Of a DNA stretch of 64,000 bases, positions 2,429-63,069 are shown one piece after another. Numbering within the stretch: the stretch's first letter is position 1; every line of letters starts with the position of its first letter. The position numbers and the translations under genes are program-made. The DNA comes from Dimorphilus gyrociliatus. Taxonomy: Eukaryota > Animalia > Annelida. The stretch spans positions 305,310-369,309 of the forward strand of contig CAJFCJ010000005.1 of the NCBI GenBank assembly GCA_904063045.1, read 5' to 3'. The notes beneath the pieces were generated by a model. It had not been told where the DNA came from. It did not search any database and saw only the letters and a list, made by a program, of their open reading frames with translations.

Positions 2429-5400
2429 TCAAGATGTCTTGAACACTTTATGCGATTTCTGAAGGAGTTTTCTTAATAAAGCGATAGCTAACGATATATC
2501 CGAATTAATCTTCTCGTTGGTTGATCCAGATAAATTTTGAAAAGAAAGATAATATTTATTTCCCTCTACAAAAATTAAAGTTTCGCAAATAGATTCATTC
2601 AGACAAAGTGAATTTTTATGACTAAATTGAATAGCTTTGAATAAACATAGTGTAAAGATAAATATATCTTTGATTCCCTTAATATCAGTTTTATATTGGA
2701 AAGGAGATAATTTATGAAGATATTCTTCAGATGAAATATGATATTTAAAGCAATTTTTAAAGAAATGTAAATCTATAATCATATAGAATTCATTATTGAT
2801 ATTGAATATCTAAATATACTATATACATTCTAATTTCACTTCGTCTCTTGCTTTGGATAGAAGAGCTTGTCTTAATTGATTAAATGAATATTAATTAATT
2901 CATTCATAATTAATAATTTCTGTTTTAAACAACAGACCGTTTCTTTCTATTCTTCTTCCATATTTCGGATACTGTATATACAAATGGATTTAGTATAGCG
3001 TTCATTGGAACAAGTAACATAACAATCCAAATGTAGATATCATTTTTGATTTGAAATTTAACGACCAACGAAAATAAACCTTGAATGATATCATTACTTG
3101 GCTTTTGTATACGGTATATACAGTATAGATTCAATTCAAACCTAACGCTGAAATTGGTATCCAACAGCCAATATTCGTTAAAACTATAACCAAAGCTGTC
3201 TTTTTCACAGATGTAAATGAATTGCTTACATTTTTGGAGAATTGTGACGCTTTCCACAGTGAAAATAGTATTATACAATATATGACACCAATACTTATTG
3301 ACAATACGAACATAAGAATTCCGTATATCCAATAAGAATACATCCATCCGCTAGTATTTTCGCTTCTAATGTAAACATTAAAACAGATTGGTGTGTTCGA
3401 ATAGTAATCCTTAAAGAATGAACAGTTTTACATAAATAATAAATAATAATAATTGAATGATTAAAGTTGAAATACTTTAAATAAGAAATTTGGAAGAATT
3501 GAAAGAGTAATTGAAGATATTAAATTAAAGATGATAATTAAAGATATAAGATATATATTATTGAAATATTCTTCAAATGGATATTTAACGACTAAGAATC
3601 TCTCAATTGTTATTGCCAATAAGATTAATGATGAAAATATTAAAGAAAAACTAATAAATATTCCAATAAAACTACACGTCCAACTAGATTTCCATATTTC
3701 GTCAAATAATATATAATTGCCTTCGTATTGTTTATCTTTTATAGCTAGAGTAAGTATTGATAGCGAAGTACTTAAATCTCCAATTGCAAGCGATAGATAT
3801 AATAAATGCGATAGACGTTGAAATGAATGAATACGAAAAAATAATGATATAACATTACCGGAAACGCCAAAAACTGCCATAAGCCATACGCATATTTTCA
3901 ATCCATTTGAAACTAATAAATCTGAACACGATGTAAATAATTCACTACTAGGAAGACAGTTTTTTATTGTCTTTTGATATTTCCAAATATAGCAACAAAT
4001 GCTAAAGTATTCGCTAACTAGATATTGAATTTGTGTAAATAGTCGAAATATTTTAGGATTACGGGAATATGGTATTTCCGTTTTGTTTAAAAATAGCTTT
4101 TCAACACTTTGAAGTGGAATAGCACCTCTACCATCAATATGTTTAATATTGCAATCCAAAAGCGATAAGATTTTCAATTTTAATAGACTATTCAAATTTG
4201 AAAGAGATAGTGAAGAATATAACACACCAATTATTTCTAAATGACGAAGATTTGGAAAAATGGAAAATGAGAATTCGTTTATAGTTTCACTTTGAATTTT
4301 ATATATTTTAATAAATTGAAGTAATTGAATTTCTTTTAAATTGAAATATAATGAAAAATTAAATTCCATTTCTTTTAATTCAATTGAAATAAGATTTGGA
4401 AAGTTTTCATTTAAGAGAATATTATTCAATTTACATTGATCTAGTCCTAAATCCATAATGAAGGATAAGGATAGATTTTGAACTAAATCTAAAGTAAGTG
4501 ATTTAAAAATAGCTCTTTTGTATAATGAATGATGATATTCTTCAACAGTTGAATTGGTGATTGATTTCTTTGTACAATTTATTGTTTTAGTTTGTAAATT
4601 TATATTGCAATTGTCTGAAGATGGCATTGAATTTGTACAACTATTTTCGTCACTACCATCTTTACACTGTATAATTCCATCACAAACGTTGTCTAGCTTT
4701 AAAAGTATACTGTCTTCTCGACATTGGAAGAAACCTTTCGGCCGAAATTGATCTAATATGTACATATTGCATATATATCTTGCGATTGTATAATAAAAAG
4801 TAATAACCGCAATCGATTTCATCATCACCTTTCGTACAGTGAGTAATACCATCGCATATCAATGATACCGGTATACAATAGCCGCTGTCTTGGCATCCAT
4901 AAGTTCCATTCAAGCATATGTGATTTTCACAGTCATTTAAATGGTAGTATGGACCCTGTATTTGAGATAATATCTCATCTTCAAGACCAATTTGCAAATT
5001 GCACGCATTTTTACTTTCTTTAATGAACAGTGCGCATGCTTTATAAAATAAATAGAAATCTAGAATTATCCAATTGTTTTAAATTTGAATGATTAACCTT
5101 TGAATTCCTTAGCTGTATCGCAAAATTCATTTTCTTCATCACTATTATCTTTGCAATCATATCTTGTATTGCAGTAAAATTCTCTTGGTATACATCGATT
5201 TTTATCGCAATGGTATGAATTTTTTTGACAGATTTCTAGATTTCAAAGTTTTAATTTAGCTAATCCAGTTAAATGTTATTTTCTCTCTACTTAGATCGGG
5301 ATTAGTAGAAGATGTTTTGCATATTTCATCACTTTTATCTTCACAATTTATTATTGAATCGCAAAATTTTTCATTCGGAAGGCATTTCATGTTTGAACAT

Positions 5401-9733: not shown

Positions 9734-10010
9734 TGAGTGAACTGAATAGGAAAACATTATGTATTGAATCGTCTTCTTGTCATATTTAAATAGTATTATA
9801 AAATGTATAAAAATGATAGTATAAAATAGACATAATAGAAAAAAATACGTTTAACGTATGGCTACTAAAAATTTTCATTGAAGAAAAGCCTTGTTAAGAC
9901 CTTTTAATGCTATTAAACATTCGTAAATTTTGTTGGCAGGCCTTCTTAATACTTATAGTTGTCTACTCCGTTTTGGTTATATTTACTTTACTTAACCATA
10001 CGGACGACAA

Positions 10011-11649
10011 ATGAGAAAACTTAAGGAAATTGTTCTTCAATTTATTACGGACTATCCTGATTTACTAATTGATTATCCACATAAAAGGAATATTGTTCTG
10101 CCTCAAAGCATCTCTCAGGAAATTTTAGAGAATATTGATAAGAAACACAACAAATTATTAGAAAAATATTTACCGTATTTCAATTGCAAATATACGATTT
10201 TAAAAGAAGTGAACATTCATGCAAGATTTATTAGTGAAACTTCAATATTTTCCTTTCTAAATGGTCATAAAATTACTAATTTTAAACTATATTTTTGTGA
10301 TAATTGTCAATTGGGAACGATATTTGATTATTTAAAGAGAAAATCGAAATTAACAGAACTTACAATATCTGAAGTAAATATTAAAGAATTTAGATATTCA
10401 AACAAAATTAAAACTACTTTAAAAAGATTATTCGGAAAGTTAAAATTGAATAATTTAACTAAATTAGATTTTAGTTATACAAATTTAAATGATAATGGAT
10501 TTAAATGGATTTGTAAAAATTTAATAAATCTTCAACAATTAGATATTTCTGGAACAAAATTAACAAGATTAACAAGATTAACAAGATTAAAGAATTTAAT
10601 TATTTTTAAATTTACCGGAAGTTATAGGAATTTTAATCGTTTTGAATTATATAGCTTAAAGGATTTAAAAGAATTGGAAGAGATTCATCTATTCGAAAGC
10701 GATGCTTTACTAACAGGTCTAAGAAAGACATTATTAATAACACTACCTAATACATTCTTTGAAGATTGTGAATGGAAAAGATTGAAATATTTTAGCGCTG
10801 TAATTTTCATATCGGATCCGGCGTTCAGTCTCATGTAAAACGATTCTTGATTATTCAGGTAAAACTCTATGCTATGTTTTCTTATTCCCTCCAGAAATTT
10901 TATTCAAAAACATCCAGCATTGAAATGTTTATGCTTTTGGAATCATATAAACAATTCTTTAAGACCATTCTCACCTTCGCAAGATATTATCTTCCCTAAA
11001 GATTATACAAGAGTACGAAATTATATAGTTTTATTCTTTACTATTTCCTTTTATGACTCAAATTTTCCTTTAAAGGATTTCAACGTTCACGAAGTAAATA
11101 GGCTTATTGATATCTTTAACAACATAAATATTCCATTTGGTGATTTCTCAAACTTACTGTTATTCATCGACCGCCATTTTAATGATATGAATGATGCCGA
11201 AAAGGAAACTTTTGTTGAAAAATTGAATAAAGAAAAATTTTTTAGCGTATGACTAATTTATTCTCAATAATATACTTTTACCTTTAATGAAATAAACAAC
11301 ATTTTTTCCAGGTGACCTTGAAAAGAATCAGTTATTTCTTCAACAAGAACATCTTTAGTAATCATATAATAAATGTAAACGTTCTTGAGAGTTTTGGAAG
11401 AGTCTTAGATATTTATGATTATTCTACAAAAGATTTAGATTCGTGGCTTGAAATTTGCTTGATAATTAAAGATTTAATCAATTCAAAAGGTGAACAGAAT
11501 TGAAACTTTATTAAATAATTAACTAATTAAACTATTATTGAAAAATATTAGATTTTAATACTGCCGAAAATTATCTGGCTGCTCTCGTTCCAGTATTTAG
11601 AAAGTGTTGGCAACTTTTCAAATTGATTAATTTCAAATATAATACTTAA
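10011..11649 (+). CDS. ZYG11/ZER1-like LRR protein, paralog 1 (BC-box/Cul2-box-like N-terminus, LRRs, helical C-terminus); 4 exons
   Basis: N-terminus KLKEIVLQFI…LPQSISQEI; LRR LTKLDFSYTNLNDNGFKWICKNLINLQQLDISGT; exon 2 starts NFIQKHPALK. Short introns join ORFs 10011, 10869 and 11312 and a last exon ending TAA at 11649. Confidence 0.7.
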
Positions 11650-11771
11650 GACAATCAATAAAGATGACAATTGAACTGAAATAATGACTCAATAAACTAT
11701 AAGTTAAAAGAATCATCCGGAAAAACTGATTTATTATTCTTTGATTCAATATATTTCAAAAATCGAATAGT

Positions 11772-13025
11772 TCATTCACTTTCTTTTGAATCTAAATGTT
11801 GATTTTTAATATTTTCGACATTTTCAAGAGCCGAATTGACTGAAGCATAAATAGAAGAGAAAAAAGCTTCGAAAAGTGTAACTAGGAATCTTTCTTTAGA
11901 CGAAATTTCTTGAACATTTATTGCTGGTGCAACCATTTCAATTTTATATTGTTGATTGAACACTGACTTTACTATTTGTTCTTGATATTTACAATAAGGT
12001 TGAGATGATATTATAACAATTGACTTGGACATTAAACTTTCGCCGTACTGTCGAATTGTTTCCTCAAGGCTACTCTTTGTATTTGGTCTTACATATTTCC
12101 ATACTCCTTTATTCTGTTCTTTAAGGATCTTTGGACTATTTACAATATCTAATGGATATTTATTTATTATCGGGTTTCTCTTTGCTAAAAACGATATCAT
12201 ATCTGTTTCTGTTGGCCATTTAACACCGTATTTTGAATTAATACATTCATAGATTTGTTCATGAGCAGACATAACAGCAGCTCCATCTGTTACGGATACT
12301 CCTTCAAGATACTTATCAATTTCGCTTTGTATTTCCATACAAATATCGCATTTATTGTATTCATCCGATGACTTCTGCAGCATTTCTGCAATAATTTCTA
12401 CAGCTATCGTTTCTCCATTGAGTCTATTGTCGGAATCATTGGGCCAAAGATCTCTCTCACCTCCGACTAGAATAATACGAGATGGATTTATTTCCTTATT
12501 CTTTAGCATGTTTGCTGCAGCCTGTAATCTTAGATTAAAGCCATAATAAGCTGCTCCCAGAATTAACAGAGTATGGAATGTATTATTCTTGGGGATAATC
12601 TTATCTATAAATCCTAAATTACGAAATTTTTCAACCAGCGTATCGAAAAACTGTACCATGTCAATACGGGAAGACATTTGTCTTCGTTCCATTCCTTCCG
12701 GTCTGAAACGTGATCTCTGATTTTGTCCTATACTATTAAACCATTTTAGAGCCTCTGATATAGATGGAAACTTTTGAAAGAAAGTTCCAGCGTCCAATAG
12801 ATTGTTTTTAGCCTCTTCATTAGTCATTAAAGTATCCGGTGTTTTGCCGTTTGTAAAAGCTCCTGAAGCGTGAAATAATTGTAAAAAATCCATTTTCTGT
12901 GAGAGTGTTTTATAGCCGTAATAATGTATTGTTTCAAACAAAATATTCCTTTTTTTACAGTCTTCCGCATCAATTTGATCATAAGATAAACATTCCTTAG
13001 TCGTTAACTCATTAGAAGTATCCAT
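11772..13025 (-). CDS. Intronless 417-aa protein with YdcF/DUF218-like (HUP-fold) motif order; bacterial-like hypothetical protein
   Basis: Single uninterrupted ORF (ATG at 13025). Motifs: LGFIDKIIP…LLILGA…RL…IILVGGERDLW…PTETDM…RPNT…IVIISSQPYCKYQ…IEMVAPA. The fold assignment comes from motif recall, not a search. Confidence 0.75.
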   Translation of the reverse strand: MDTSNELTTKECLSYDQIDAEDCKKRNILFETIHYYGYKTLSQKMDFLQLFHASGAFTNGKTPDTLMTNEEAKNNLLDAGTFFQKFPSISEALKWFNSIGQNQRSRFRPEGMERRQMSSRIDMVQFFDTLVEKFRNLGFIDKIIPKNNTFHTLLILGAAYYGFNLRLQAAANMLKNKEINPSRIILVGGERDLWPNDSDNRLNGETIAVEIIAEMLQKSSDEYNKCDICMEIQSEIDKYLEGVSVTDGAAVMSAHEQIYECINSKYGVKWPTETDMISFLAKRNPIINKYPLDIVNSPKILKEQNKGVWKYVRPNTKSSLEETIRQYGESLMSKSIVIISSQPYCKYQEQIVKSVFNQQYKIEMVAPAINVQEISSKERFLVTLFEAFFSSIYASVNSALENVENIKNQHLDSKESE

Positions 13026-13476
13026 TTTATGTTTCTTTAAAAAAAAAAGGAACAATATTAAATGTTTAATAATGTTACTATCTAATTATTCAACTAGTTC
13101 TATTTTCTAACTTCTTAGTTGATAAGGCAGATTTTTTTTTTTTGTAATATGTATTGAAAATATAAACCGACTGGCCTATTTTTTATTCAGATTAGATGAA
13201 GTAACGCGAAAGAATTCGATTTGAATTGGAAAAAAATTAGTAATTATTGTTACAGACACGGCAGTATTTATCATTTTAGCGGATATTTTTATATAGACAA
13301 AATATTTCGTTATATTTGCTTTAGTATTATGTTTATAGACTGAAAAGTTGTTGTACAGACTCGGTCTTAATGTAGAATTTGTACTCAATGTAGTATATTC
13401 GAGTATTGATTAGAAATAATACGATAAGAAACTTTATCATTGCTTTTTTCATTCATTGAACATTCAACTGCAAAAA

Positions 13477-15034
13477 TTAACGGTAATTGAATGAATTTTC
13501 CAGAATTTTCGATAGTATATCGTTCATTTCTTTAAATTTTGAATTATATTTCATATCTTGAAAATATATTAAATAAATTATAATTAATTAGTAATTTGCA
13601 TAATTTATTAGAAACTTACGTATTAGTGGTTTTATTTCTAATATTCTTTCAGTAATATTATTCCATTCAAATTGATTTCCACAATCTTTTTCTTTAATCC
13701 ACAGAATCAGTTGAAAGAGATGATAAATGAATAAAGTTCTATCGCATCTTGTAGGATAGTTACAAATTGTATAATAGAGTTTTAAAGCTCTATTGAATAT
13801 CTTGAACAAATGATAGATAATTTAAAAAGTGTTAATTTATTAATAATTTCAATACCTTTAATAAATTATCACGATGTAGTTTCTCTACATCAATATCTCT
13901 TTGATCCGCCGATCTAGCTTCTAAATGTAATACAATAAATTCAAAAAGCTGTACCAAATCATCAAAAGAAACTTTTAAACAACTAAAATAATCGATTTCG
14001 CTGTTGATGAAATCTACTGCAAAATTCTGGAATAGATAAAAAAAAATCGTAGAGTATAAGTTTTATAGTTTTAATACTAGATATCACGTGATAGTATCGT
14101 GGGAAAATAAGTTGATAATTATATAAATCATTTCGTAGTATGCTATTTTTAGGTATTTTACCAAAATATTTCAACTTTGTATGGCATTTTACGAATTTCC
14201 TATTGGAAATAGAAGAAAGTGTCCAGTTAGTTTAAAGTTATGTAATAAGAGTATTATTAACTTGATAAACTGTTCGTTAATTCTGAAAATAGGAAGGGAA
14301 ACGTATTCTAAATTCATCCAACTGTTGTAATAGGACAACAAATTTTCAATTGTATTCAATAATTCAATACAATTTTCATCAATTTTACTCGAAAATTGAA
14401 TTTTTTGTAGATTCTTAAGTGATTTTAATACTAATAGATCATTAATACGAAAATATTCGCAACATTCATCAAATATAAAACTATTCAAGTTGATTAAATT
14501 ATCAATTGAATTGAATTTTAGTATAAAGGTTTTGGAAATATTCAATTTTTTTAAATTTATGAATTCTTTGCAAATAATATCGAATCCTTTTGTTTCTATA
14601 TTCGTTCCATATAAATTTAGGTTTGTTATATTTTTAAAATGAACTAATTTGCATAATTCATAAAATAAATACTTCTTTTCTTCTAATTCGTTAATGTTGT
14701 TATTATTTTCCAAAATATTAATTAGGTCATTTATATCAATATCATAAAAATTAAATATTCTCCAATATTTACATGGTGGAATCTTTTTAAATGATAATTT
14801 CGATGAATATTCATAAGAATACGCTTCATATTTCAAATTCTTTAATTTGTATCTATTACATTCTAAAGTATGAAGAAATTTCTTTGAAAGTCCGCCATTT
14901 TTTTTAGTTATTAACCAAAAGATTTGATCTTTTAGATCATAGGGAATAACATTCTCCTCTTTAAGCAAAGAAGTTTGATACATTTGAAAATTCTTTTCAA
15001 TATATAATAAAATTAAATTCTGTAGACTATTCAT
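13477..15034 (-). CDS. ZYG11/ZER1-like LRR protein, paralog 2
   Basis: SLQNLILLYI…IPYDLKDQI; LRR ITNLNLYGTNIETKGFDIICKEFINLKKLNISKT; exon 2 KFVKCHTKLK; late exon with EWNNITERILEI. Spliced by eye to a stop near 13477. Confidence 0.7.
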
Positions 15035-15739
15035 CCTTCAGGAAATGATATTCAACAACTTATCCTTATCTAAAACTCTTTAAAATCATAGAGAAATGTC
15101 TATTTAAGTAACATTGGTATTATATGAAACTGTATATTTTTAACTAGCATTAATCCCCTTACCAAAGGAATTATGTAAGATTATTGAAATAATTAAAGAA
15201 AAAAAAATCCGGATTATTAGAATAAATGAAACTAAGTTTAGTGTTAAAAAAAATCAATTACTTAATCACTGTTTTCATAAATGGCAGCTTTAATTATTAA
15301 TAATATTAAAACTCATATGATAAATGATATTCAATAAAGATTACATTAATGCTACAATGATTACTATGAAATTATTCAACTACTTTAGTTTAAATACAGT
15401 AGAACTGTTGTCAATGGCAGCAAAATGTACTTTGAACGACCCTTTAATACTTATTCATGAGATTTCATTAATATTGAACTATCGGTGAACTTTTCAACTG
15501 TAGAATCATACATTACATTAAATAAAGTCAAATTTACGCATAGTAACAACCTCGTTTTGCTATGGGTCAATAGTCTTTGTGAAAAAAAGGTTAGGGAAAG
15601 ACCTTGTCAATACTGATCCAACAAAAGAAGAATAGCCAAGTTTCATTATTGTAATACTATATTAGTGGAAAGATTTCAGTATCACATTGAAGCATCAAAC
15701 ATTAAACTCTGAAAAGCAAACTTGAAATCGATAAAAACT

Positions 15740-18610: not shown

Positions 18611-21600
18611 ATGAAAGCTTTGGAAAAATTAAATTTTAGTTTACAAAGAGAAAATCTGCAAAAACTCTTCTTCGATCAAAGTATTTTTATTCAAGTAATA
18701 CAGAAATTATCTGATCAAAATATTATAAATTCTAAAAAACAAGAAGAAATCGATAATCAATATAAATTTAGAGGTAAAATGAAAACAACCAATCTAATTC
18801 TAGATATATTGGCAACCCAACCTCTTAATACTGCAAATGAGATAGTAAATGGTCTAGAGGTGGATAATAAATACTTGTCCGAACATCTCATGGATATTCA
18901 AAATGGATGGTTAAAATTAGTTGCTGATTTGAAAAATGAATGGAAAGAAAAATATTTGTACATTAAACTTCTTCCTCTTGGATATGTTAGAGAAATAAAA
19001 ACGACAGATGTTCAAGCATCAATTGAAATGATGAATTTAAGCAATAAAGCTATATTCGAAACGTATTTAAATTCAATAAATTTGAATTATTCAAATTTTT
19101 ATAAAATTTTTCAAGCAAATTTTAATAAAATCCTTATTCAAGGTGAATCGGGAATTGGTAAAAGCGTTCAATTAAAGTATCTTGTTCATTCGTGGGCAAA
19201 CGATTATTGGGAGATATGCAAAGATAAAATTATTATAGTTATTATATCGAGGAATGTTTTACCAAGTGATGACGTATACGATACAATACTAAAGCAGAAT
19301 TTTAGAAATATTCCCTATATGAATAGAGACATCTTAATGTCGCTTTTCCAGGAGAAAAATTCCAATATTCTACTATTTATTGATGGAGCCGATGAATTTA
19401 ATATCTTGAATCATCCGTTAAATAATATTTTTGAAAAATCAAATTGTTCCATACCAACTGTAATTTGGTCTCGTAAAAGAAAAGCTCAAACTATTCAAAG
19501 TTCGTGTGACGTCACTTTCCAATTAACAGGTTTCGATAGTTCACAATTTAAGAGTTTTATACAAAGGTATTTTATTTCTATTGAAAAATCGGAAGTTTTC
19601 ATTAGAGAACTTGAGCAACAAACTAGTACTATTCAAAGCTTATTAAAGGTACCATTGATGGGACTGATGTTTTATTTTATCTGGCAGGAACTAGGTAGTA
19701 TTCTGGATAAAAGCTTATACGAAATCTATGAGAAATTAGTTGTCTTACTTCAAAAGAATATAGGATTATCAAGTGAAAGTATATTGAATAGAATGTTAAT
19801 GGTCTATAAACTATGTTTCATTTATCTACCATCTTCTAAAATATTAGTACCAGTAGACAAACACGAAGAAGAGGAACTGGTGAAATGTATAGGCTATTTT
19901 GCTCAAATTATACCTCAGTATCATACAACTCCGAGATCGGTTGAAATTCAATTTTTACACCAATCTTTACAAGAATATTTCGCCGCAAAATATCTAATTG
20001 ATAAATTTCAAACAACGAAAAGTCTTAGCTACTGGAAAACATCATTCGATAATCAATTAACTAAGATGAATAATACGAAATTATACAACGTTATTGAATA
20101 TATTAGACAGAGTTCAAATGAAATATTTCAAAAATTCCTAACCGTTTCGGAGAAATTGCAAGAAATTTACAATTGTAGTAAAGAATTGAAAGATTTATTA
20201 GCGAATGGTATAAAGGATAACAATAAATTATTGATTAAAGACGAATATATCAGTAATATTACTGTAGAAATTTTAACCGAAAAACTCGGAATACATTGCG
20301 TGGATATAACTTTAATAAATCCAAATATAGATTTATCTTTTATGACCAATCAGCTTTGTTCAAAAGCTAAATGTTTAAAGAATTTCATCATTTGTGTGAA
20401 AAGTTCAGAAAAATTTGTAGAATTGAATGCAAATCTATGGTTCAGTATTTTAAACTTGTTAGTTTCTACTAAACTTGAAAGCTTTATATTGAAAAGTGTA
20501 CAAAATGATAACAATTTACAGAAATCGTGTCTTGAAAAAAGATATCGTAATTCGGTAAGGGATACGGATTCTAAACAAACTACAAGTACTATGGTACAAG
20601 ATTCAACTCCAAATCTTCGAACACTCGATCTTTGCGGATGTCGTCTGTCCGAATCTCAATCAAAAGAACTTGCATCGTTATTATTAAAGTGTAATAATTT
20701 ACATTCTTTAAATATCAGATATACGAAAGTAATGAATTCTGGATTTATAGATATTTGTAATGGATTAAAAAATAGTTGTAATAGACTAAAAGTATTAAAT
20801 TTATATGGATTTGGTTTGTCTGAAGCAGAGTCTCTGGCTTTAGGAGAAGTATTAAGTGTCTGCTGTCAAATCGAATCGATTGATTTAGGTTGGAATGTTA
20901 GTATGGGCGCTGGATTGAACTCTATATGCGAAGGTTTGAAACTGTCCAACGAAACTCTTAAAAGTCTTAGTGTCTATTGGTGTGATTTAAATGAAAATCA
21001 ATCGGAAGCCTTAAGAGAGCTGTTACTTCATTGTTCAAATATAGAAGCTTTAAATCTAGCTTGGAATAAAAATATAAATGAAGGATTACAAAGGGTATTA
21101 GAGGGTCTTGAGCATTCTCACTCTACATTAACTAGTCTTAACCTTCAAAATTGTAACCTAACTGAGAAACAGTTGGTTTATTTGGGAGAATGGATAAAAA
21201 CTTGTTCTAGTATTAAACAATTGGATTTGGGCGGTAATAGAAGTATGTTCTGCGGCTATAAAATGATAATCGACAATTTAAAATCGTCTTCCGATTCAAT
21301 AACAAGCCTTAACTTTTACGGTTGTAATTTAACCGAATTTCAAGCAACAAATCTAAAAGACCTTTTAGTATGCTGTTCAAACATTCAATCATTAAATCTC
21401 GCTTGGAATAGAAATATGGGTTACGGAATTCAATCGATAATAAACAGTTTAAAAAGTTCATGCAATACTATTAAAACTCTTAATTTTTGCGGATGTGATA
21501 TAAGAGAAACTCAATTAATATCTTTAGCAGAATTATTATCAATTTGCCCAAAACTTGAATTATTGGATTTAAGTTATAACACAAAAATGAATTATGGACT

Positions 21601-21760
21601 TAAAGAAGTAATTAACACTTTAAAAACCTCTTCAGATAATCTAACCAGTCTAAAAGTAATTGGTTGCCGTTTGACACACGATCAAGTAGATACTTTAAAG
21701 GAATTACTATTGACTTGTCTAAATGCAATTGACCAAACTCGTAAAATTTCTCTTTATTAA
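18611..21760 (+). CDS. NLR: CARD-like death fold + NACHT + RI-type LRRs, 1049 aa, intronless
   Basis: Walker A ILIQGESGIGKS, Walker B LLFIDGADEF, winged-helix FLHQSLQEYFAAKYL, alternating 28/29-aa LRRs (LRTLDLCGCRLSESQSKELASLL…). The N-terminal ~95 aa is a helical death-fold-like segment. Confidence 0.9.
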   Translation: MKALEKLNFSLQRENLQKLFFDQSIFIQVIQKLSDQNIINSKKQEEIDNQYKFRGKMKTTNLILDILATQPLNTANEIVNGLEVDNKYLSEHLMDIQNGWLKLVADLKNEWKEKYLYIKLLPLGYVREIKTTDVQASIEMMNLSNKAIFETYLNSINLNYSNFYKIFQANFNKILIQGESGIGKSVQLKYLVHSWANDYWEICKDKIIIVIISRNVLPSDDVYDTILKQNFRNIPYMNRDILMSLFQEKNSNILLFIDGADEFNILNHPLNNIFEKSNCSIPTVIWSRKRKAQTIQSSCDVTFQLTGFDSSQFKSFIQRYFISIEKSEVFIRELEQQTSTIQSLLKVPLMGLMFYFIWQELGSILDKSLYEIYEKLVVLLQKNIGLSSESILNRMLMVYKLCFIYLPSSKILVPVDKHEEEELVKCIGYFAQIIPQYHTTPRSVEIQFLHQSLQEYFAAKYLIDKFQTTKSLSYWKTSFDNQLTKMNNTKLYNVIEYIRQSSNEIFQKFLTVSEKLQEIYNCSKELKDLLANGIKDNNKLLIKDEYISNITVEILTEKLGIHCVDITLINPNIDLSFMTNQLCSKAKCLKNFIICVKSSEKFVELNANLWFSILNLLVSTKLESFILKSVQNDNNLQKSCLEKRYRNSVRDTDSKQTTSTMVQDSTPNLRTLDLCGCRLSESQSKELASLLLKCNNLHSLNIRYTKVMNSGFIDICNGLKNSCNRLKVLNLYGFGLSEAESLALGEVLSVCCQIESIDLGWNVSMGAGLNSICEGLKLSNETLKSLSVYWCDLNENQSEALRELLLHCSNIEALNLAWNKNINEGLQRVLEGLEHSHSTLTSLNLQNCNLTEKQLVYLGEWIKTCSSIKQLDLGGNRSMFCGYKMIIDNLKSSSDSITSLNFYGCNLTEFQATNLKDLLVCCSNIQSLNLAWNRNMGYGIQSIINSLKSSCNTIKTLNFCGCDIRETQLISLAELLSICPKLELLDLSYNTKMNYGLKEVINTLKTSSDNLTSLKVIGCRLTHDQVDTLKELLLTCLNAIDQTRKISLY

Positions 21761-31636: not shown

Positions 31637-34600
31637 ATGAATAGCAGCGAAGAATTAAAGATAAATCCTCTACTTTCGTTTTATAAAAACAACCTAAAAG
31701 AACTATTAGCAGACGACGAACGATTTATCATTCATCTTTGCCAAGAGAGTGTTTTTAATCTTGACGATAGAAAACGTGTAAAGTTGGATTTCGAAGCAAT
31801 TTTTAACAGTTATATTCTAACATTACCTACTTATAAACTTTTAGCTATTTTACATAAATTATCACTAGATAAACACGTAAATTTAGCTCGTAAAATAGAA
31901 AATACATGGGAAAGTTTAATAATAGAAACAAAGAGATTAGCTGTTGAAAACTATTCAACAGTGTTGAAATTTTCCAAATTTCAAAGTGATAAAGTAAACT
32001 TTATCAATTTTCAAAATATATTAACTCCAATACAAATCGTTGCTCGAAAGAAACCCGAATCATATAAAGATGATGTTTACTTTGAGGAAGGTTTCGAATT
32101 TCTAGAAAATATTGACAATTCTCAAGGTCGTTTTCTAATTAAAGGTGAAGCTGGCGTTGGAAAAAGTTATCATTTTATTAAACTTATTCATTTATGGGCG
32201 ATTCAAGAGAGAATCCTTCAAGATTATCTCGTTTTAAAAGTTGATTTGAGTCAACTTTCTTCTAATGATAGCTTTGAAGAGAATTTATACAATCAGAATT
32301 TTAGCAAAGATTCATGGGTAACACGTGACCTTTTACATTATTTCTTATCGGACGATTGCGAATATAGAAACATAAAGATTATTTTTCTATTTGACGGAGC
32401 AGATGAATACGGAAGTAAAGAATCCCTTTTTTCAAATATTATTGAAAATGACGGATGTATCAAATTTCCAATAATTGTTTGGTGCCGAAACTGGAAAGCC
32501 GAACAAATAGAAGATACTTATCATAATGTTCTTGAGATATTAGGTTATAAAGATGATCATATACCTTTATTTTTTGCCAAATTCTTTCACGAAGGAACAG
32601 ATATATTTCAAAATTTAATAGAATCCGATAATACTCCAAAGAGTCAGCAACTAATAAACTTTTTACAAAAGAATAGAGAGGACCTACTAAAATCTTGCTC
32701 AAATCCTTTAATTGCATCTATAACTGCAAATATCTGGGATACTAAATGGAATTCAATGAAGAAAGATTCATATTCAATTTACGATGATGCTGTTGAATTG
32801 TTGATGAAGAATCGTACGAATACAATCGATAAAGAAGATTACGATGCATTTCTTCATCAATGCGCACTAGAAGCATTTATAAACATTCTTTTTGATAAAC
32901 CAATCGAAATGAAAAAATACAGTGAAGATTCTAAAGTATTTGGCAACTTATTAACAACTTTAACATGCTTTCAAACCGGAAAGAAACATTATAGATTTAT
33001 ACATTTTTCATTTCAAGAATATTTCGCAGCTAAATTTATCATAAAATGCTTAGAAACGAACGCCAATTGCCTTATTTCAGATGTTACTGAACAGCAATGT
33101 CAAGGTAAACTTTTAGAGATAATTTGCCAATCAACTTATACTCTTAAGTTAAAGGCGACTTTTGATTTTATTAAAAGTCAAAATATGCAAATTTTTTCAA
33201 TGATTATCAAAGAAAATCCAATAATTTTAAGTATTTTGGATACTGTTAACGAAAAAATTATAGATTTAATCAAATACAAAAGTGATAGTCAAAAGATATA
33301 TCTCGAAGATGGATATCTATCAACAACAGTATGGTTTTCGATTGTTGAAACATTTTCAAGAAATATTACTGTATTATCGTTCAAAAATGTTAAAATTAAC
33401 TTTCAAAAGTTTATTAATATTTCAATTGAAAGCTTAAAAGGAACATTGATTGAATTATCTATAGACTCTGGTGTGTATAATCATTTTTCTGTTAGAATGA
33501 TAGAGGATATCGTCAAAGAATTCTCCAATTTAAAACTACTCTTATTAGCTAATATTCCATTTAATAATTCAAAAAAGGCAAACTTTTTCATCAATTCAAA
33601 TTCTTTAGAATCGTTAAGTTTAATTAATTGTGAAATTGACTTTAATTTACTAAACCTTTTGAAATGTAGGCATTTAAATCACCTAAATCTATCCCACAAT
33701 ACAATAGCAGGTAAGAATTTTCACGTTGAATAACATATTTAATAACTAAATTTCTATTTATTTCATAATTTAGCTGGTCAATTAGAAAAACTTGTTGATT
33801 ATCTAGAAAATTCCCTTGAACTTCATTCAATAAACTTTTCTTACTGTGCTTTAAAAGATGAACATTTTACGATTTTGAAGAGATTATTCGAAGAGATGAC
33901 CGATATTTACAATTTCTGGTTAGATGGAAACGAATTTAGTGATAGTTTTGTTGATGATTTAATGAAATTTCTAATTGAAAATGGCAATAATGTTAAAGAA
34001 TTCTCAGTTAAAGATTGTAATAGTAACATTACAGCGTCGACAGTTACTAGTCTATTGGATAATAATCTATCTTTAAATATTCTTAATCTCTATGGTAATA
34101 AACTGTTAAATGTAAGAGAAGTTTCATTTCCAAAGAGTATTATTCTTTCCAAAGAACTTCAGGAGTTAAGATTTCCCATAATGGATTGCGATACTGCCAT
34201 TGAATATAAAGATTTCTATGAAATAATGGATGGAAATCTTGAATTGAAAATGTTGGATTATAGTGGAAATAACTTAAAAGTACAGTTTCTATTTGGTGTT
34301 TTACAAAAGATTATCTCTTTTTCGACTAATCTAGAGAGTATAAACCTTAGTAATTGTAAATTACCATTAGAACATCAGGAGGAATTATTTAATAGTTTAA
34401 AAGTACACGATAAACTGTTGAATATGAATTTAGAAGGAAATTTATTGAATGAAAAGATATTTCTTAATTTTATTAATCATAGATCAAAAAAATTGAATAA
34501 AGAAGGAGTGAAACTAAACGTATCTCAATGCGATCTTAGACAATTTTCTCTAATCGAATTGATAAATTTGAATATGTTATCTATAAATTTATCTGGAAAT

Positions 34601-37147
34601 AACTTGAAAGAAACTATTAATTGGAAGAAAATGACAATAAAAAATCCTACATGTATTAAAGAACTTCTCCTTCAAAAGTGCCAATTAAACTCTTCGTTTG
34701 TTAACGTACTAACCGTAAATCTTCATAATTTACCATCATTAGAAGTTTTGGATATATCAATTAATAAGTTTAGTGATCAAGCCATTTTGAATTTTTTCAA
34801 TAAGGCCTCAACTCAGAAAAATAGCTTAAAATATGTTTATTTTTACGGTGGAAAGTTAACTATAAAAGCTTTAATTGATTTATCAATATCTATAAGTAAA
34901 ATAAATGATATTGAAGTCATTAATTCACCTTTTATAGACGAGGAAAGTGATGATTTTAACCAATTGAATTCTATTAATTTAGCAAATTCGAAATATTTTA
35001 ATCTACAAATTATTAATGAAATTCTATTTCAAATAGACAGTATAATGAAATATAAGAAATTACAAATAAATTCAACAGAATCACCAAGATACGATATGAT
35101 TCGAATGGTAAAAGAATCATCATTAGAAATAAGGAGTATAAGTATTTATGACGATTTAATACCAGATGAAATAAATCATATGAAATCAATTATTGAGAAT
35201 AATACCGATATTGAAACTATGGAATTAAATTTTAATTTATCCCATGAAACTATAATGACGTTTTTTGGAATGACAAAAGAATTTATTCGAAGGATTAAAT
35301 CATTTAGTTACAATTCAAATAGCAATTCAAAATCAAGTATTATGGATATAATAAATTTTCATGAATTCTTACATAATCAACAAGATTTAAAACGTCTCTC
35401 TTTAACTTGTTTGAATTTTGTAACAAGTAACGCCATTAAATTTTTTAAAGACTATCCAAATAATTCACAAAATTTGAATACTTTGAAATTATTTCGTAGT
35501 AAATTTACAGAGGAGACAAGCGAATATCTTGGAAAATTCATTAGTAATCAATTAGGTTTAAAATCTCTGGATTTAGGATCAATTAATCTTGATGGTAATA
35601 TTGGAGAGAAATTGTTTAAGAATATCTCAAACTCTTGCTGCAATCTAAATAAAATCAACTTATCTAATTGTCATTTAAACGATACAGCATTGGAATATCT
35701 TGGACAAGTTTTTAGTTATCAAACACATCTGGATTCTATAGATTTATCTGGAATTGATTTAAGTAACAAATACGGATGTCAATTATTTCAGAATTTGGCC
35801 AATTCAAATAAATTTACTAAAGTTAAATTGCAAAATTGTAGTTTAAATGGTAAAATTTTACCAGATTTGCAAAGATTTATTCAAAATCAAACAAATTTAA
35901 ATGTCGTTGATCTGTCTAACGTAAAGTATAATGTCGATATTCAACAAGATATTCTTCAGGATTTCTCATTCAAGTGTAAAAATATAAGTGAACTTTACTT
36001 ACGCAATTGTCGCTTTAGTGATAGTCTCTCGAGAGTTATTGGAAAACTACTAACTGAACAAAACAGTATAAATGTTCTGGATTTATCATTTTCTAACTTA
36101 TCTAAAACGGGAGCTGAAAATTTGTTCAATCAAATATCTCATAATACAAGCTTATCTGAAGTTGATCTAAGCAATTCAACATTTACGGAAGATATGATTG
36201 AATACATAGGGAAATTTCTTTACAATCAAATATCTCTAAAAGTTATGAATATTTCCATGATAAAACTTAAAAATATGGTTGGAATGTTATTCTTTCAGCA
36301 TCTTACAAATCCAAATATGAAACTCAAGGAACTGTATCTAACTGGCTGTAAATTTACTGCTAACATGACTGAATACATTGGAAAGTTTATTGATAGCCAA
36401 AATCATTTACAAATTTTAGATCTATCAAACACAAATCTACGTTCAAACATCGGAAAAAATCTCTTTATTAACATATCGAACAAATGCTGTAATTTAAGGA
36501 ATTTGAATATGGAAAATTGTCAATTAACAGAAGATATGACAGAAGAACTTGGAAAATTCATTGGCTATCAGAATCAATTGAATATACTAGACTTGGCCGA
36601 TGTAAATTTAGAGCATAACATTGGAAAGAATTTGTTTGAAAATATTTCTAAAGTATGCTGTAACATCCATGAAATATGTTTGGATGACTGCAAACTAACT
36701 GAAGATATGTCAGATTCTCTTGGAAAATTCATTGGTTATCAAAACAAATTGGAGCTTTTGTATATGGCGAATGCAGACCTGAAAAATGATATTGGGAAAA
36801 ATTTCTTCAGAAATATTTCCAGCCAATGCTGCAATATTAGAGAAATTATTATGGAAAAATCCATATTTACAGAAGATGTAACAAAATATCTGGGAGAATT
36901 TATTAGCTACCAAAAGAAATTGAAACTATTAGATATTGCCGATACGAAATTAGATAATGCCATTGGAATGAATTTATTTAAAAATGTATCGGATCTATGC
37001 TGTCCAAAAGCCGTCAATTTATTAGGATGTAAACTTTCAGATCAAGTTACCGAATGTTTAGATAATACCTTTGGCTTAGAAACAGATATTGCTATGGATT
37101 CTTCGGCAGATGAATGTGTTAATGAAGAGATAGATATGTTAGCCTAA
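31637..37147 (+). CDS. Large NLR: death-fold-like N-terminus + NACHT + very long LRR region; two exons (intron 33711-33773), about 1815 aa
   Basis: Walker A FLIKGEAGVGKS, Walker B IFLFDGADEY, FIHFSFQEYFAAKFI. Donor GCAG|GTAAGA at 33711 and acceptor TTTAG| at 33773 put ORF 31637 in frame with ORF 33875 (5448 nt spliced). Confidence 0.9.
36350..37040 (+). repeat. 171-bp (57-aa, paired LRR) coding tandem repeat in the NLR C-terminus
   Basis: ACAGAAGATATG/ACTGAAGATATG/ACAGAAGATGTA at 36527, 36698 and 36869 (spacing exactly 171). Protein unit TEDMxExLGKFIGYQNxLxxLDLA…IGKNLFxNISxxCCN. Confidence 0.85.
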
Positions 37148-62744: not shown

Positions 62745-62817
62745 TGCCGGAACCCGGGATTGAACCAGGGACCTTTAGATCTTCAGTCTAACGCTCTCCC
62801 AACTGAGCTATTCCGGC
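62745..62817 (-). tRNA. trnF-GAA: tRNA-Phe (GAA)
   Basis: Reverse complement GCCGGAATAGCTCAGTTGGGAGAGCGTTAGACTGAAGATCTAAAGGTCCCTGGTTCAATCCCGGGTTCCGGCA; 73 nt, full cloverleaf, no encoded CCA. Confidence 0.97.
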
Positions 62818-62997
62818 CGATATGTAAACTTGAAATAAATCTTCATTTTTATTTACAAAAGTATTTTGTTCAAGAATTAAAGTTCTACTTTAACTGATGA
62901 AAAAGGTAAAAAAAAGAACCAATAAATCAAACCTATACATAAAAAAAAGATAAAGACGTAAGTCATTTCATATAAATTAAAAAGAAAAAAAAAGAAT

Positions 62998-63069
62998 CTC
63001 CGTGACGGGGAATCGAACCCCGGTCTCCTGAGTGACAGTCAGGGATACTCACCACTATACTATCACGGA
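62998..63069 (-). tRNA. trnD-GTC: tRNA-Asp (GTC)
   Basis: Reverse complement TCCGTGATAGTATAGTGGTGAGTATCCCTGACTGTCACTCAGGAGACCGGGGTTCGATTCCCCGTCACGGAG; 72 nt, paired acceptor and anticodon stems, G discriminator. Confidence 0.96.

Follow-up and report, generated by a model that had tools for sequence, protein, structure and literature searches.

How a long, uninterrupted gene of bacterial appearance came to lie among intron-bearing genes of an annelid is the question raised by a locus of Dimorphilus gyrociliatus. The window analyzed here is a stretch of 64,000 nt (assembly GCA_904063045.1, contig CAJFCJ010000005.1, positions 305,310 to 369,309 of the forward strand), and the gene in question is an open reading frame (ORF) of 417 codons (Table 1). 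A first-pass annotation of the sequence had described this gene as an ORF of about 1.25 kb encoding no signal peptide and surrounded by neighbors split by introns of about 60 nt; it had assigned to the encoded protein a motif layout like that of YdcF and other DUF218 proteins and a resemblance to proteins of Rickettsiales and Chlamydiae, and had read the gene as endosymbiont-derived, horizontally acquired, and located in an immune locus. The same annotation proposed a comparison of codon usage with host genes, a search of RNA data for transcripts and for an intron in the 5′ untranslated region (UTR), and a structural comparison of the protein. Our analyses indicate that the gene is very probably of bacterial origin and was horizontally transferred into the nuclear genome of a dinophilid annelid; the best explanation as a whole, i.e., a transferred bacterial gene retained as a working gene, together with a proposed mechanism whose biochemical part is graded separately below, is judged likely.

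Origin, transcription, and integration of the gene

The ORF translation is identical to a gene call on the same contig of GCA_904063045.1 at 314–321 kb; this accession is given for D. gyrociliatus (Annelida, Dinophilidae) in PMC12890243. The start codon (ATG) at 13025 is flanked by A at −3 and G at +4, and the frame extends to 13055 when an upstream TTG is counted (11772..13055, minus strand). With a GC content of 28% throughout the window and stops making up ~8% of random codons, the chance of an open frame of 417 codons is ~1e-16; tblastn identified a single copy of the gene within the 64-kb window. The motifs quoted in the first-pass annotation are all present in the 417-aa translation in the order given there, namely RFRPEGMERRQM, LGFIDKIIP, LLILGA..RL, IILVGGERDLW, PTETDM, RPNT, IISSQPYCKYQ, and IEMVAPA. 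The statement that the ORF is uninterrupted and encodes no signal peptide also held, with the strand being minus; no N-terminal hydrophobic segment was found in the protein (the Kyte-Doolittle mean over 19 residues peaks at 1.22, at residue 380), which is probably cytosolic, as judged from a sequence with neither signal peptide nor membrane segment.

While a word-indexed search returned only three relatives, a profile of four sequences searched against 1.84 billion cluster representatives returned 1086 at E ≤ 1e-3, 398 at E ≤ 1e-10, and 42 at E ≤ 1e-30. Every context fetched for a near relative was a dense bacterial gene array, with one relative, P0002, as the sole exception. The contig carrying P0010 (1.08 Mb, 31% GC) encodes MgtE, an ABC transporter, aspartokinase, an ankyrin-repeat protein, BamE, and DNA polymerase I (PolA); genes for LptF/G, GcpE, TatA, and an ankyrin protein are found around P0019, genes for QueC, a lytic transglycosylase (SLT), and FabD around P0006, and genes for a tRNA synthetase and GTP cyclohydrolase I around P0008, while P0151 directly adjoins a gene encoding a VirB4 type IV secretion ATPase (L014 737–4408). 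The VirB4 gene beside P0151 and the ankyrin proteins near P0010 and P0019 suggest bacteria that live with a host and might mean that some members of the family are secreted. Taxon-labeled members in GTDB include two Rickettsiales metagenome-assembled genomes (MAGs) and one Alphaproteobacteria MAG; this query (12 sequences) amounted to one peptide pattern with three matches and understates the range of the family in GTDB. A member (pairwise E 1e-20) is also carried by Candidatus Cyrtobacter comes (Rickettsiales, Midichloriaceae), which lives in a ciliate as an endosymbiont, and another by a further Alphaproteobacteria MAG; neighbor clusters in the ESM Atlas are labeled chiefly Pseudomonadota, Actinomycetota, and Chlamydiota. 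The resemblance to Rickettsiales and Chlamydiae proteins put forward in the first-pass annotation is borne out by the Rickettsiales MAGs, by Candidatus Cyrtobacter comes, and by a mostly chlamydial structural cluster described below. No relative was present in the viral contigs scanned (0 matches), which argues against a viral vector. Among 116 members scanned (60 close and 56 distant), no Pfam model of the local copy reached its cut-off and the names of relatives were uninformative; the family appears to be undescribed beyond automatic labels.

Two maximum likelihood (ML) trees were computed, i.e., a quick tree with 69 rows and a careful tree with 43 rows under LG+C20+F+G4 with posterior mean site frequencies (PMSF). 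In the careful tree, the window protein groups with P0002 at 100/100, and the quick tree agrees. This animal pair falls inside a 17-row clade (100/99) together with P0006, P0008, P0010, and P0151, all from bacterial contexts; the clade also holds P0048, whose cluster includes the Cyrtobacter protein, and the GTDB Rickettsiales proteins fall in a different well-supported clade. With the root set on a distant, shorter subfamily, the animal pair is thus nested within the donor domain in a supported tree. The distant subfamily is a reasonable outgroup because it is without the helical insert found in the subgroup of the worm protein and gives weak DUF218 matches.

P0002 is the only eukaryote-type copy besides the window gene among the relatives examined, most of the 1086 being without a taxon label. 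It is intronless, encodes 417 aa with 47–48% identity to the window protein, and was found on contigs of 3.7 kb and 1.9 kb (GC 27%) from two other runs. A gene with leucine-rich repeats (LRRs) located downstream of P0002 (L001 872–3685) shows 32% identity (E 7e-18) to the convergent LRR neighbor in the window and is broken by a GT..AG intron of ~64 nt, which is followed by a homologous second exon. Because this LRR neighbor is intron-bearing and homologous, the P0002 contig represents genomic DNA of a related eukaryote. Less probably, P0002 is a locus missing from the D. gyrociliatus assembly; a paralogue present in the assembly would have shown on a long contig. Neither animal copy is disrupted, and both retain the family-wide residues; judging from these two sequences, the gene has thus apparently stayed whole in two lineages that separated long ago. 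The LRR gene is oriented differently at the two loci, being on the same strand downstream of P0002 and convergent in the window, which is apparently the outcome of an inversion or an independent rearrangement since the two loci split.

Vertical inheritance of an ancient animal or eukaryotic gene lost almost everywhere else, or a transfer from animals to bacteria, is one rival explanation; in its favor, the root was placed and not inferred, and one Atlas neighbor cluster is just 64% Bacteria among its labeled members. This explanation is nevertheless very unlikely, as the ~1,100 relatives have bacterial contexts wherever these were checked, across several deep clades, whereas the two eukaryote-type copies form one shallow pair inside the 100/99 clade. 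The gene is also intronless while its neighbors carry several introns each, and the three-helix insert of the protein is common to the bacterial subgroup and has no counterpart in the distant subfamily.

Integration and transcription were assessed by mapping sequencing runs on positions 9800–15300, using the three of five runs (from two studies) that hold this stretch and a further run, X6, with the same species label; the evidence comes from assembled contigs, including those of X2 (2017 study, with a different organism label) and X3 (2020 study), and neighboring spliced genes were read one exon at a time. As contigs of X2 and X3 are spliced in the neighboring genes, both libraries are RNA-derived whatever their label. 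The neighbors were indeed split by short introns, as first described; spliced contigs of X2 and X3 confirm GT..AG introns of 60, 63, 65, and 62 nt in the LRR gene on the plus strand, and X2 contigs confirm four introns of 63, 55, 61, and 62 nt in the minus-strand neighbor (CT..AC, i.e., GT..AG on the minus strand). The ORF, by comparison, is covered in X2 and X3 contigs without any splice joint, and the same contigs place its 5′ UTR at ~100 nt or more, with no intron seen in it, showing a transcribed, unspliced gene next to spliced host genes. One X2 contig runs from the ORF into spliced exons of the convergent LRR gene with zero differences, and a DNA contig of 6170 nt (X1) spans 9800–15300 without a difference, although X1 may be the source of the assembly itself. 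The ORF sits on a 4.55-Mb scaffold (4,546,684 bp) of GCA_904063045.1 and is flanked on both sides, within 100–250 nt, by expressed intron-bearing genes. On the strength of the X1, X2, and X3 contigs, the ORF is physically continuous with expressed, intron-bearing host genes in data of two studies and is transcribed. The D. gyrociliatus genome has been described as a 73.8-Mb PacBio assembly with a median intron length of 66 bp that went through four rounds of Blobtools decontamination (PMC7854359).

Contamination or a chimeric assembly, in which the ORF of a culture-associated bacterium was misjoined to worm DNA, is extremely unlikely; while the closest relatives come from low-GC, host-associated-looking bacteria with a composition near that of the host, and the one fully covering DNA run may be the assembly's own source, the 2017 RNA contig connects spliced LRR exons and the ORF region with no mismatch, coverage in a second run extends over the ORF and its flanks (11791–13128), expressed intron-bearing genes lie close on both sides, the scaffold belongs to a PacBio assembly decontaminated four times (PMC7854359), and a related eukaryote has the same gene adjoining a homologous LRR gene.

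Several points weigh against the transfer reading or limit what can be said of its donor. The animal pair lies in a polytomy within the 17-row clade, and the tree singles out no donor among its rows; the best identity to a bacterial relative is 35–38%. A bacterial context was verified for the members that were looked up. The RNA evidence consists of contigs, which carry no information on strand, poly(A), or expression level. Codon usage is host-like in the ORF, with GC content at third codon positions of 0.246 as compared to 0.18–0.23 in host genes and a correlation of relative synonymous codon usage (RSCU) with the host set of r = 0.87, but the RSCU correlation of the low-GC bacterial relative P0010 is nearly as high (r = 0.82); codon usage, one of the comparisons proposed at the outset, is thus a weak discriminator of origin because low-GC bacterial relatives correlate almost equally.

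With the animal pair nested among proteins from bacterial contexts, and with integration and transcription observed, horizontal transfer as first proposed is upheld. The fuller description as an endosymbiont-derived gene in an immune locus fared less evenly; bacterial origin stands, an endosymbiont as the source of the gene is plausible, and “immune-type” is a statement on the NACHT and LRR domain content of the locus only, as predicted from its sequence. Transfer from bacteria to animals is a known kind of event; this gene was not previously reported in the literature found, in which there was also no gene-transfer survey of D. gyrociliatus, and gene transfer is not among the findings of the genome paper itself (PMC7854359). 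The locus represents a clean case of bacterium-to-animal transfer in an annelid with several lines of evidence.

Fold, conserved residues, and proposed mechanism

An AlphaFold2 model built from a 60-sequence alignment (predicted local distance difference test score, pLDDT, 92.5; predicted template modeling score, pTM, 0.89) replaced a poor model built from four sequences (pLDDT 71.2). In this model, an all-helical N-terminal domain precedes an alpha/beta core interrupted by a three-helix insert (Table 1), and the chain ends in a long C-terminal helix. The core carries the motifs LLILGA (beta1), IILVGGERDLW (beta2), WPTETDM, RPNT, and SSQPYCKYQ. The insert is present in the subgroup of the animal copies and has no counterpart in the shorter distant subfamily, as determined by hhalign.

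In an exhaustive VIA search, E. coli YdcF (3ca8_B) ranked first of 48,161 chains, with Z 11.0 as compared to 9.7 for the next match; the alignment comprises 177 residues (root-mean-square deviation 3.7 Å, model range 120–398, 8% identity). After YdcF, Rossmann-like CARF, HemD, and universal-stress domains follow with Z 8–9.7. YdcF/DUF218 clusters of the Atlas align at template modeling (TM) scores of 0.68–0.70 by target, and the predicted model shows the three-layer alpha/beta fold of YdcF. The YdcF/DUF218-like layout assigned by the first-pass annotation is supported by these structural matches and by weak DUF218 matches in distant family members. The structural comparison proposed there gave a split outcome; Foldseek found no match in the PDB with either AlphaFold2 model, and it was the exhaustive VIA search that identified YdcF.

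A number of sequence-based results speak against placement in this fold family. Pfam DUF218 (PF02698) matched the window protein with 12 bits (E 0.2) against a cut-off of 27.6, and over residues 153–218 only; no match came from profile searches of the PDB, whether with 4 or with 60 sequences; hhalign comparisons with YdcF alone and with four E. coli DUF218 proteins were not significant; and Pfam, NCBIfam, and PADLOC gave nothing usable on the window protein. Among relatives, Pfam DUF218 matched 1 of the 60 close ones (E 0.0044) and, weakly, 8 of the 56 distant ones (best E 9e-4). The distant subfamily is homologous to the worm subgroup (hhalign probability 100, E 1e-57), and this homology, combined with the weak DUF218 matches, leads us to place the family outside the Pfam family but within the DUF218 superfamily, as one of its divergent branches. 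We therefore read the predicted structure as a diverged form of the DUF218/YdcF (“Upr-like”) fold in which the core is preceded by a helical N-domain.

Hydropathy exceeded the threshold in 34 of 151 relatives; in 31 of these the segment is N-terminal, and most belong to the distant subfamily, while the window protein and P0002–P0010 have no N-terminal hydrophobic segment and hence no candidate membrane anchor. From these sequence features, the family seems to be split into an exported branch (insert-less, anchored) and a cytosolic branch (insert-bearing). The analysis points to a large bacterial family (~1,100 relatives) that lies outside the curated models available and is divergent and largely anchor-less.

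The closest structural cluster in the Atlas (TM 0.81 by target, 265 aa, 101 members) is mostly from Chlamydiota. Canonical Upr-like proteins have been reported as not found in Chlamydiae (bioRxiv 10.64898/2026.10.14.759067), yet the structural neighbor cluster of the worm protein is mostly chlamydial, and Chlamydiae make peptidoglycan despite the reported absence of canonical DUF218 proteins. This cluster may represent a divergent stand-in for canonical DUF218 proteins in Chlamydiae.

The first biochemical function for the DUF218/Upr-like fold was described only in October 2026, when the periplasmic E. coli DUF218 proteins, renamed UprA, UprB, and UprC, were reported to hydrolyze the linkage that joins a sugar cargo to undecaprenyl diphosphate. 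The reaction was reported to depend on a Thr-His-Arg-Glu cluster (UprA T125, H149, R152, and E182) together with a divalent cation; YdcF, a cytoplasmic paralogue with no known substrate, is without several of these catalytic residues (bioRxiv 10.64898/2026.10.14.759067). The UprA numbering fits E. coli SanA (RT125LDS, FH149CER152, and RE182F). A local hhalign match places IISSQPYCKYQ on IIITQRFHCER, in the same register as the motif order. By this register, and counted over 147 relatives, T316 corresponds to UprA T125 (Thr in 137); position 344 corresponds to His149 (Y in 57, H in 36, and F in 31, with Tyr in both animal copies); position 347 corresponds to Arg152 (Tyr in 116, including Y347 of the worm protein); and position 386 corresponds to Glu182 (D in 94 and E in 29, i.e., an acid in 123, with E386 in the worm protein). 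The family also has near-invariant residues of its own (Q101, R108, E113, R114, R166, R191, E273, R313, Q342, P343, and Q348); the worm protein carries all 11 of these and nearly all family-wide residues overall.

A possible mechanism can be outlined from these residues. A ring of arginines (R108, R114, R166, R191, and R313) would bind a ligand bearing a diphosphate or phosphate, and T316, E273, and the acid at position 386 might act on a diphosphate-linked sugar or a nucleotide-type substrate in the cytosol. The chemistry would be related to the Upr reaction without being identical to it, and the substrate would differ from that of lipid II release; such a difference in substrate and chemistry is probable because the canonical His and Arg are both Tyr here. 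This biochemical reading, i.e., a phosphate-rich ligand and Upr-related chemistry involving T316, E273, and position 386, is tentative. Arguments against it include the residue register itself, which is inferred from a non-significant local hhalign match (E 0.21) and motif order, and the lack of conservation of the His and Arg of the Upr tetrad, such that two of the four catalytic positions differ if the register is right. Clues to a substrate were also sought in genomic context and domain fusions; no neighbor gene is conserved across the five bacterial contexts (P0006, P0008, P0010, P0019, and P0151), and longer family members have no recognizable fused domain.

The main alternative to an enzymatic role is a non-catalytic binding role, in which catalysis has been lost and the protein is a ligand-binding module. 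In the cytosol it might, for instance, sense or sequester a precursor of the bacterial envelope, or a signal resembling a nucleotide, on behalf of the surrounding immune-type LRR and NACHT genes. The canonical His, which 36 of 147 relatives keep by the register used here, is Tyr344 in both animal copies, the gene is located among LRR and NACHT genes, and ligand-binding CARF and universal-stress proteins come after YdcF in the structural search. However, Tyr344 does not represent an animal-specific loss, since bacterial members of the family most often have Tyr or Phe at this position (57 Y and 31 F of 147); every other family-wide polar residue is retained, Z values such as those of the CARF and universal-stress domains (8–9.7) are common for this fold class, and PADLOC found no defense-family match for the protein. 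A binding module is accordingly rated as unlikely.

A bolder version of the enzymatic reading would have an Upr-like enzyme of bacterial origin serving the worm as part of its immunity in the cytosol, where it recognizes or cleaves a diphosphate-linked (lipid-linked or nucleotide-linked) glycan precursor of intracellular bacteria; we hold this to be distinctly improbable. If true, a building block of the invader would be destroyed, or a fragment would be released for sensing by LRR and NACHT proteins, and the Rickettsiales and Chlamydiota members could be cytosolic counterparts of the periplasmic release factors in lineages or compartments where those are absent. Independently of mechanism, a gene retained across a deep split within an LRR/NACHT cluster offers a eukaryotic handle on the function of the family and a testable link to innate immunity.

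The surrounding locus

Coordinates of the gene, its predicted domains, and other features of the window are listed in Table 1. Exon ends of the convergent LRR gene fall at 10834, 11012, 11246, and 11487; its final exon begins at 11550 and contains the stop codon (~11647–11649); AATAAA is found past this stop codon on the plus strand at 11657 and 11691. Across the AT-rich window, AATAAA is not enriched (268 matches as compared to 285 expected), and because of this the hexamer downstream of the ORF represents weak evidence for a poly(A) signal.

The 3′ ends of the ORF and of the convergent LRR gene meet within tens of bases (11550–11775), and the X2 assembly merged the two into one contig of 2157 nt; this contig fits two convergent transcripts meeting at their 3′ ends, not one transcript. 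Another X2 contig agrees with the window as far as 11775, beyond which its sequence is unrelated (ATTCCTGGATTAG...); there is no canonical splice site at that position. On the other side, the transcript of the upstream neighbor ends ~100 nt before the ORF transcript begins (the X2 record starts at 13234). In run X6 (2024), G>A differences occur throughout (87 within a single 906-nt piece), and the ORF had no usable coverage; the run looks like a methylation library made by bisulfite or enzymatic conversion. Pfam domains in the rest of the window identify two NACHT genes, further LRR genes, and a gene for a receptor with an LDLa repeat and a seven-transmembrane (7TM) domain.

Table 1. Positions of the gene, its predicted parts, and other features within the 64,000-nt window
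Feature	Position	Strand	Remarks
Intronless coding sequence, 417 aa + stop	11772..13025	minus	Stop TGA at 11774–11772; first ATG at 13025
Minimum transcribed unspliced stretch	11791..13128	minus	X3 contig 11791–13128, X2 contig 11550–13048
Candidate poly(A) signal AATAAA	11730..11735	minus	37–42 nt past stop codon
Predicted N-terminal all-helical domain, aa 28–136	12618..12944	minus	Model; carries Q101, R108, E113, R114
Predicted DUF218/YdcF-like alpha/beta core, aa 149–370	11916..12581	minus	Model and structural match
Predicted three-helix insert in core, aa 205–266	12228..12413	minus	hhalign and model
LRR (Zer-1-like) gene, convergent neighbor	10011..11649	plus	LRR_Zer-1, E 4.9e-10; GT..AG joints
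Upstream same-strand neighbor, LRR-gene homologue	13234..15034	minus	CT..AC joints; 25% identity to LRR gene on P0002 contig L001
Long single-exon ORFs with NACHT domain	18611–21760, 31637–33733	plus	E 2e-12 and 7e-7
1090-aa ORF adjoining NACHT ORFs	33875–37147		No Pfam match
ORF with LDL-receptor class A repeat and start of rhodopsin-type 7TM domain	3461–4852	minus	
tRNA-Phe(GAA) and tRNA-Asp(GTC), 180 nt apart	62745–63069	minus	ARAGORN and Rfam

Comparison with known systems

By the language-model features of the ESM Atlas, the nearest clusters are those labeled PF27209 (Rv3785_N), with a similarity of 0.94 and TM 0.66–0.70 by target, the link to this family being that of the Atlas labels. 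Proteins in these clusters are shorter (315–330 aa) than the worm protein and come mainly from Actinomycetota and Pseudomonadota; papers mentioning Rv3785 of Mycobacterium tuberculosis describe no function for it.

The Upr-like undecaprenyl-diphosphate-polysaccharide release factors (UprA, whose numbering is that of SanA, with ElyC and YgjQ as the other periplasmic DUF218 proteins of E. coli) share their fold class and the order of core motifs with the worm family, and many members of the distant subfamily have, like SanA, an N-terminal hydrophobic anchor. In contrast, the worm protein and its nearest relatives are anchor-less and for this reason are not expected to be periplasmic. The worm family also differs in its invariant residues Q101, R114, R191, E273, Q342-P343, and Q348, which are not described in the canonical family.

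E. coli YdcF (3ca8), a cytoplasmic, S-adenosyl-L-methionine-binding member of DUF218, matches the worm protein best in structure, and neither of the two has a signal peptide or membrane anchor. In both proteins the catalytic residues differ from those of canonical Upr enzymes (for YdcF, bioRxiv 10.64898/2026.10.14.759067), and neither has a known function. Sequence similarity between them is not significant, with 8% identity in the structural alignment, and, as compared to YdcF, the worm protein adds a helical N-domain of ~110 residues, a helical insert of 60 residues, and a long C-terminal helix.

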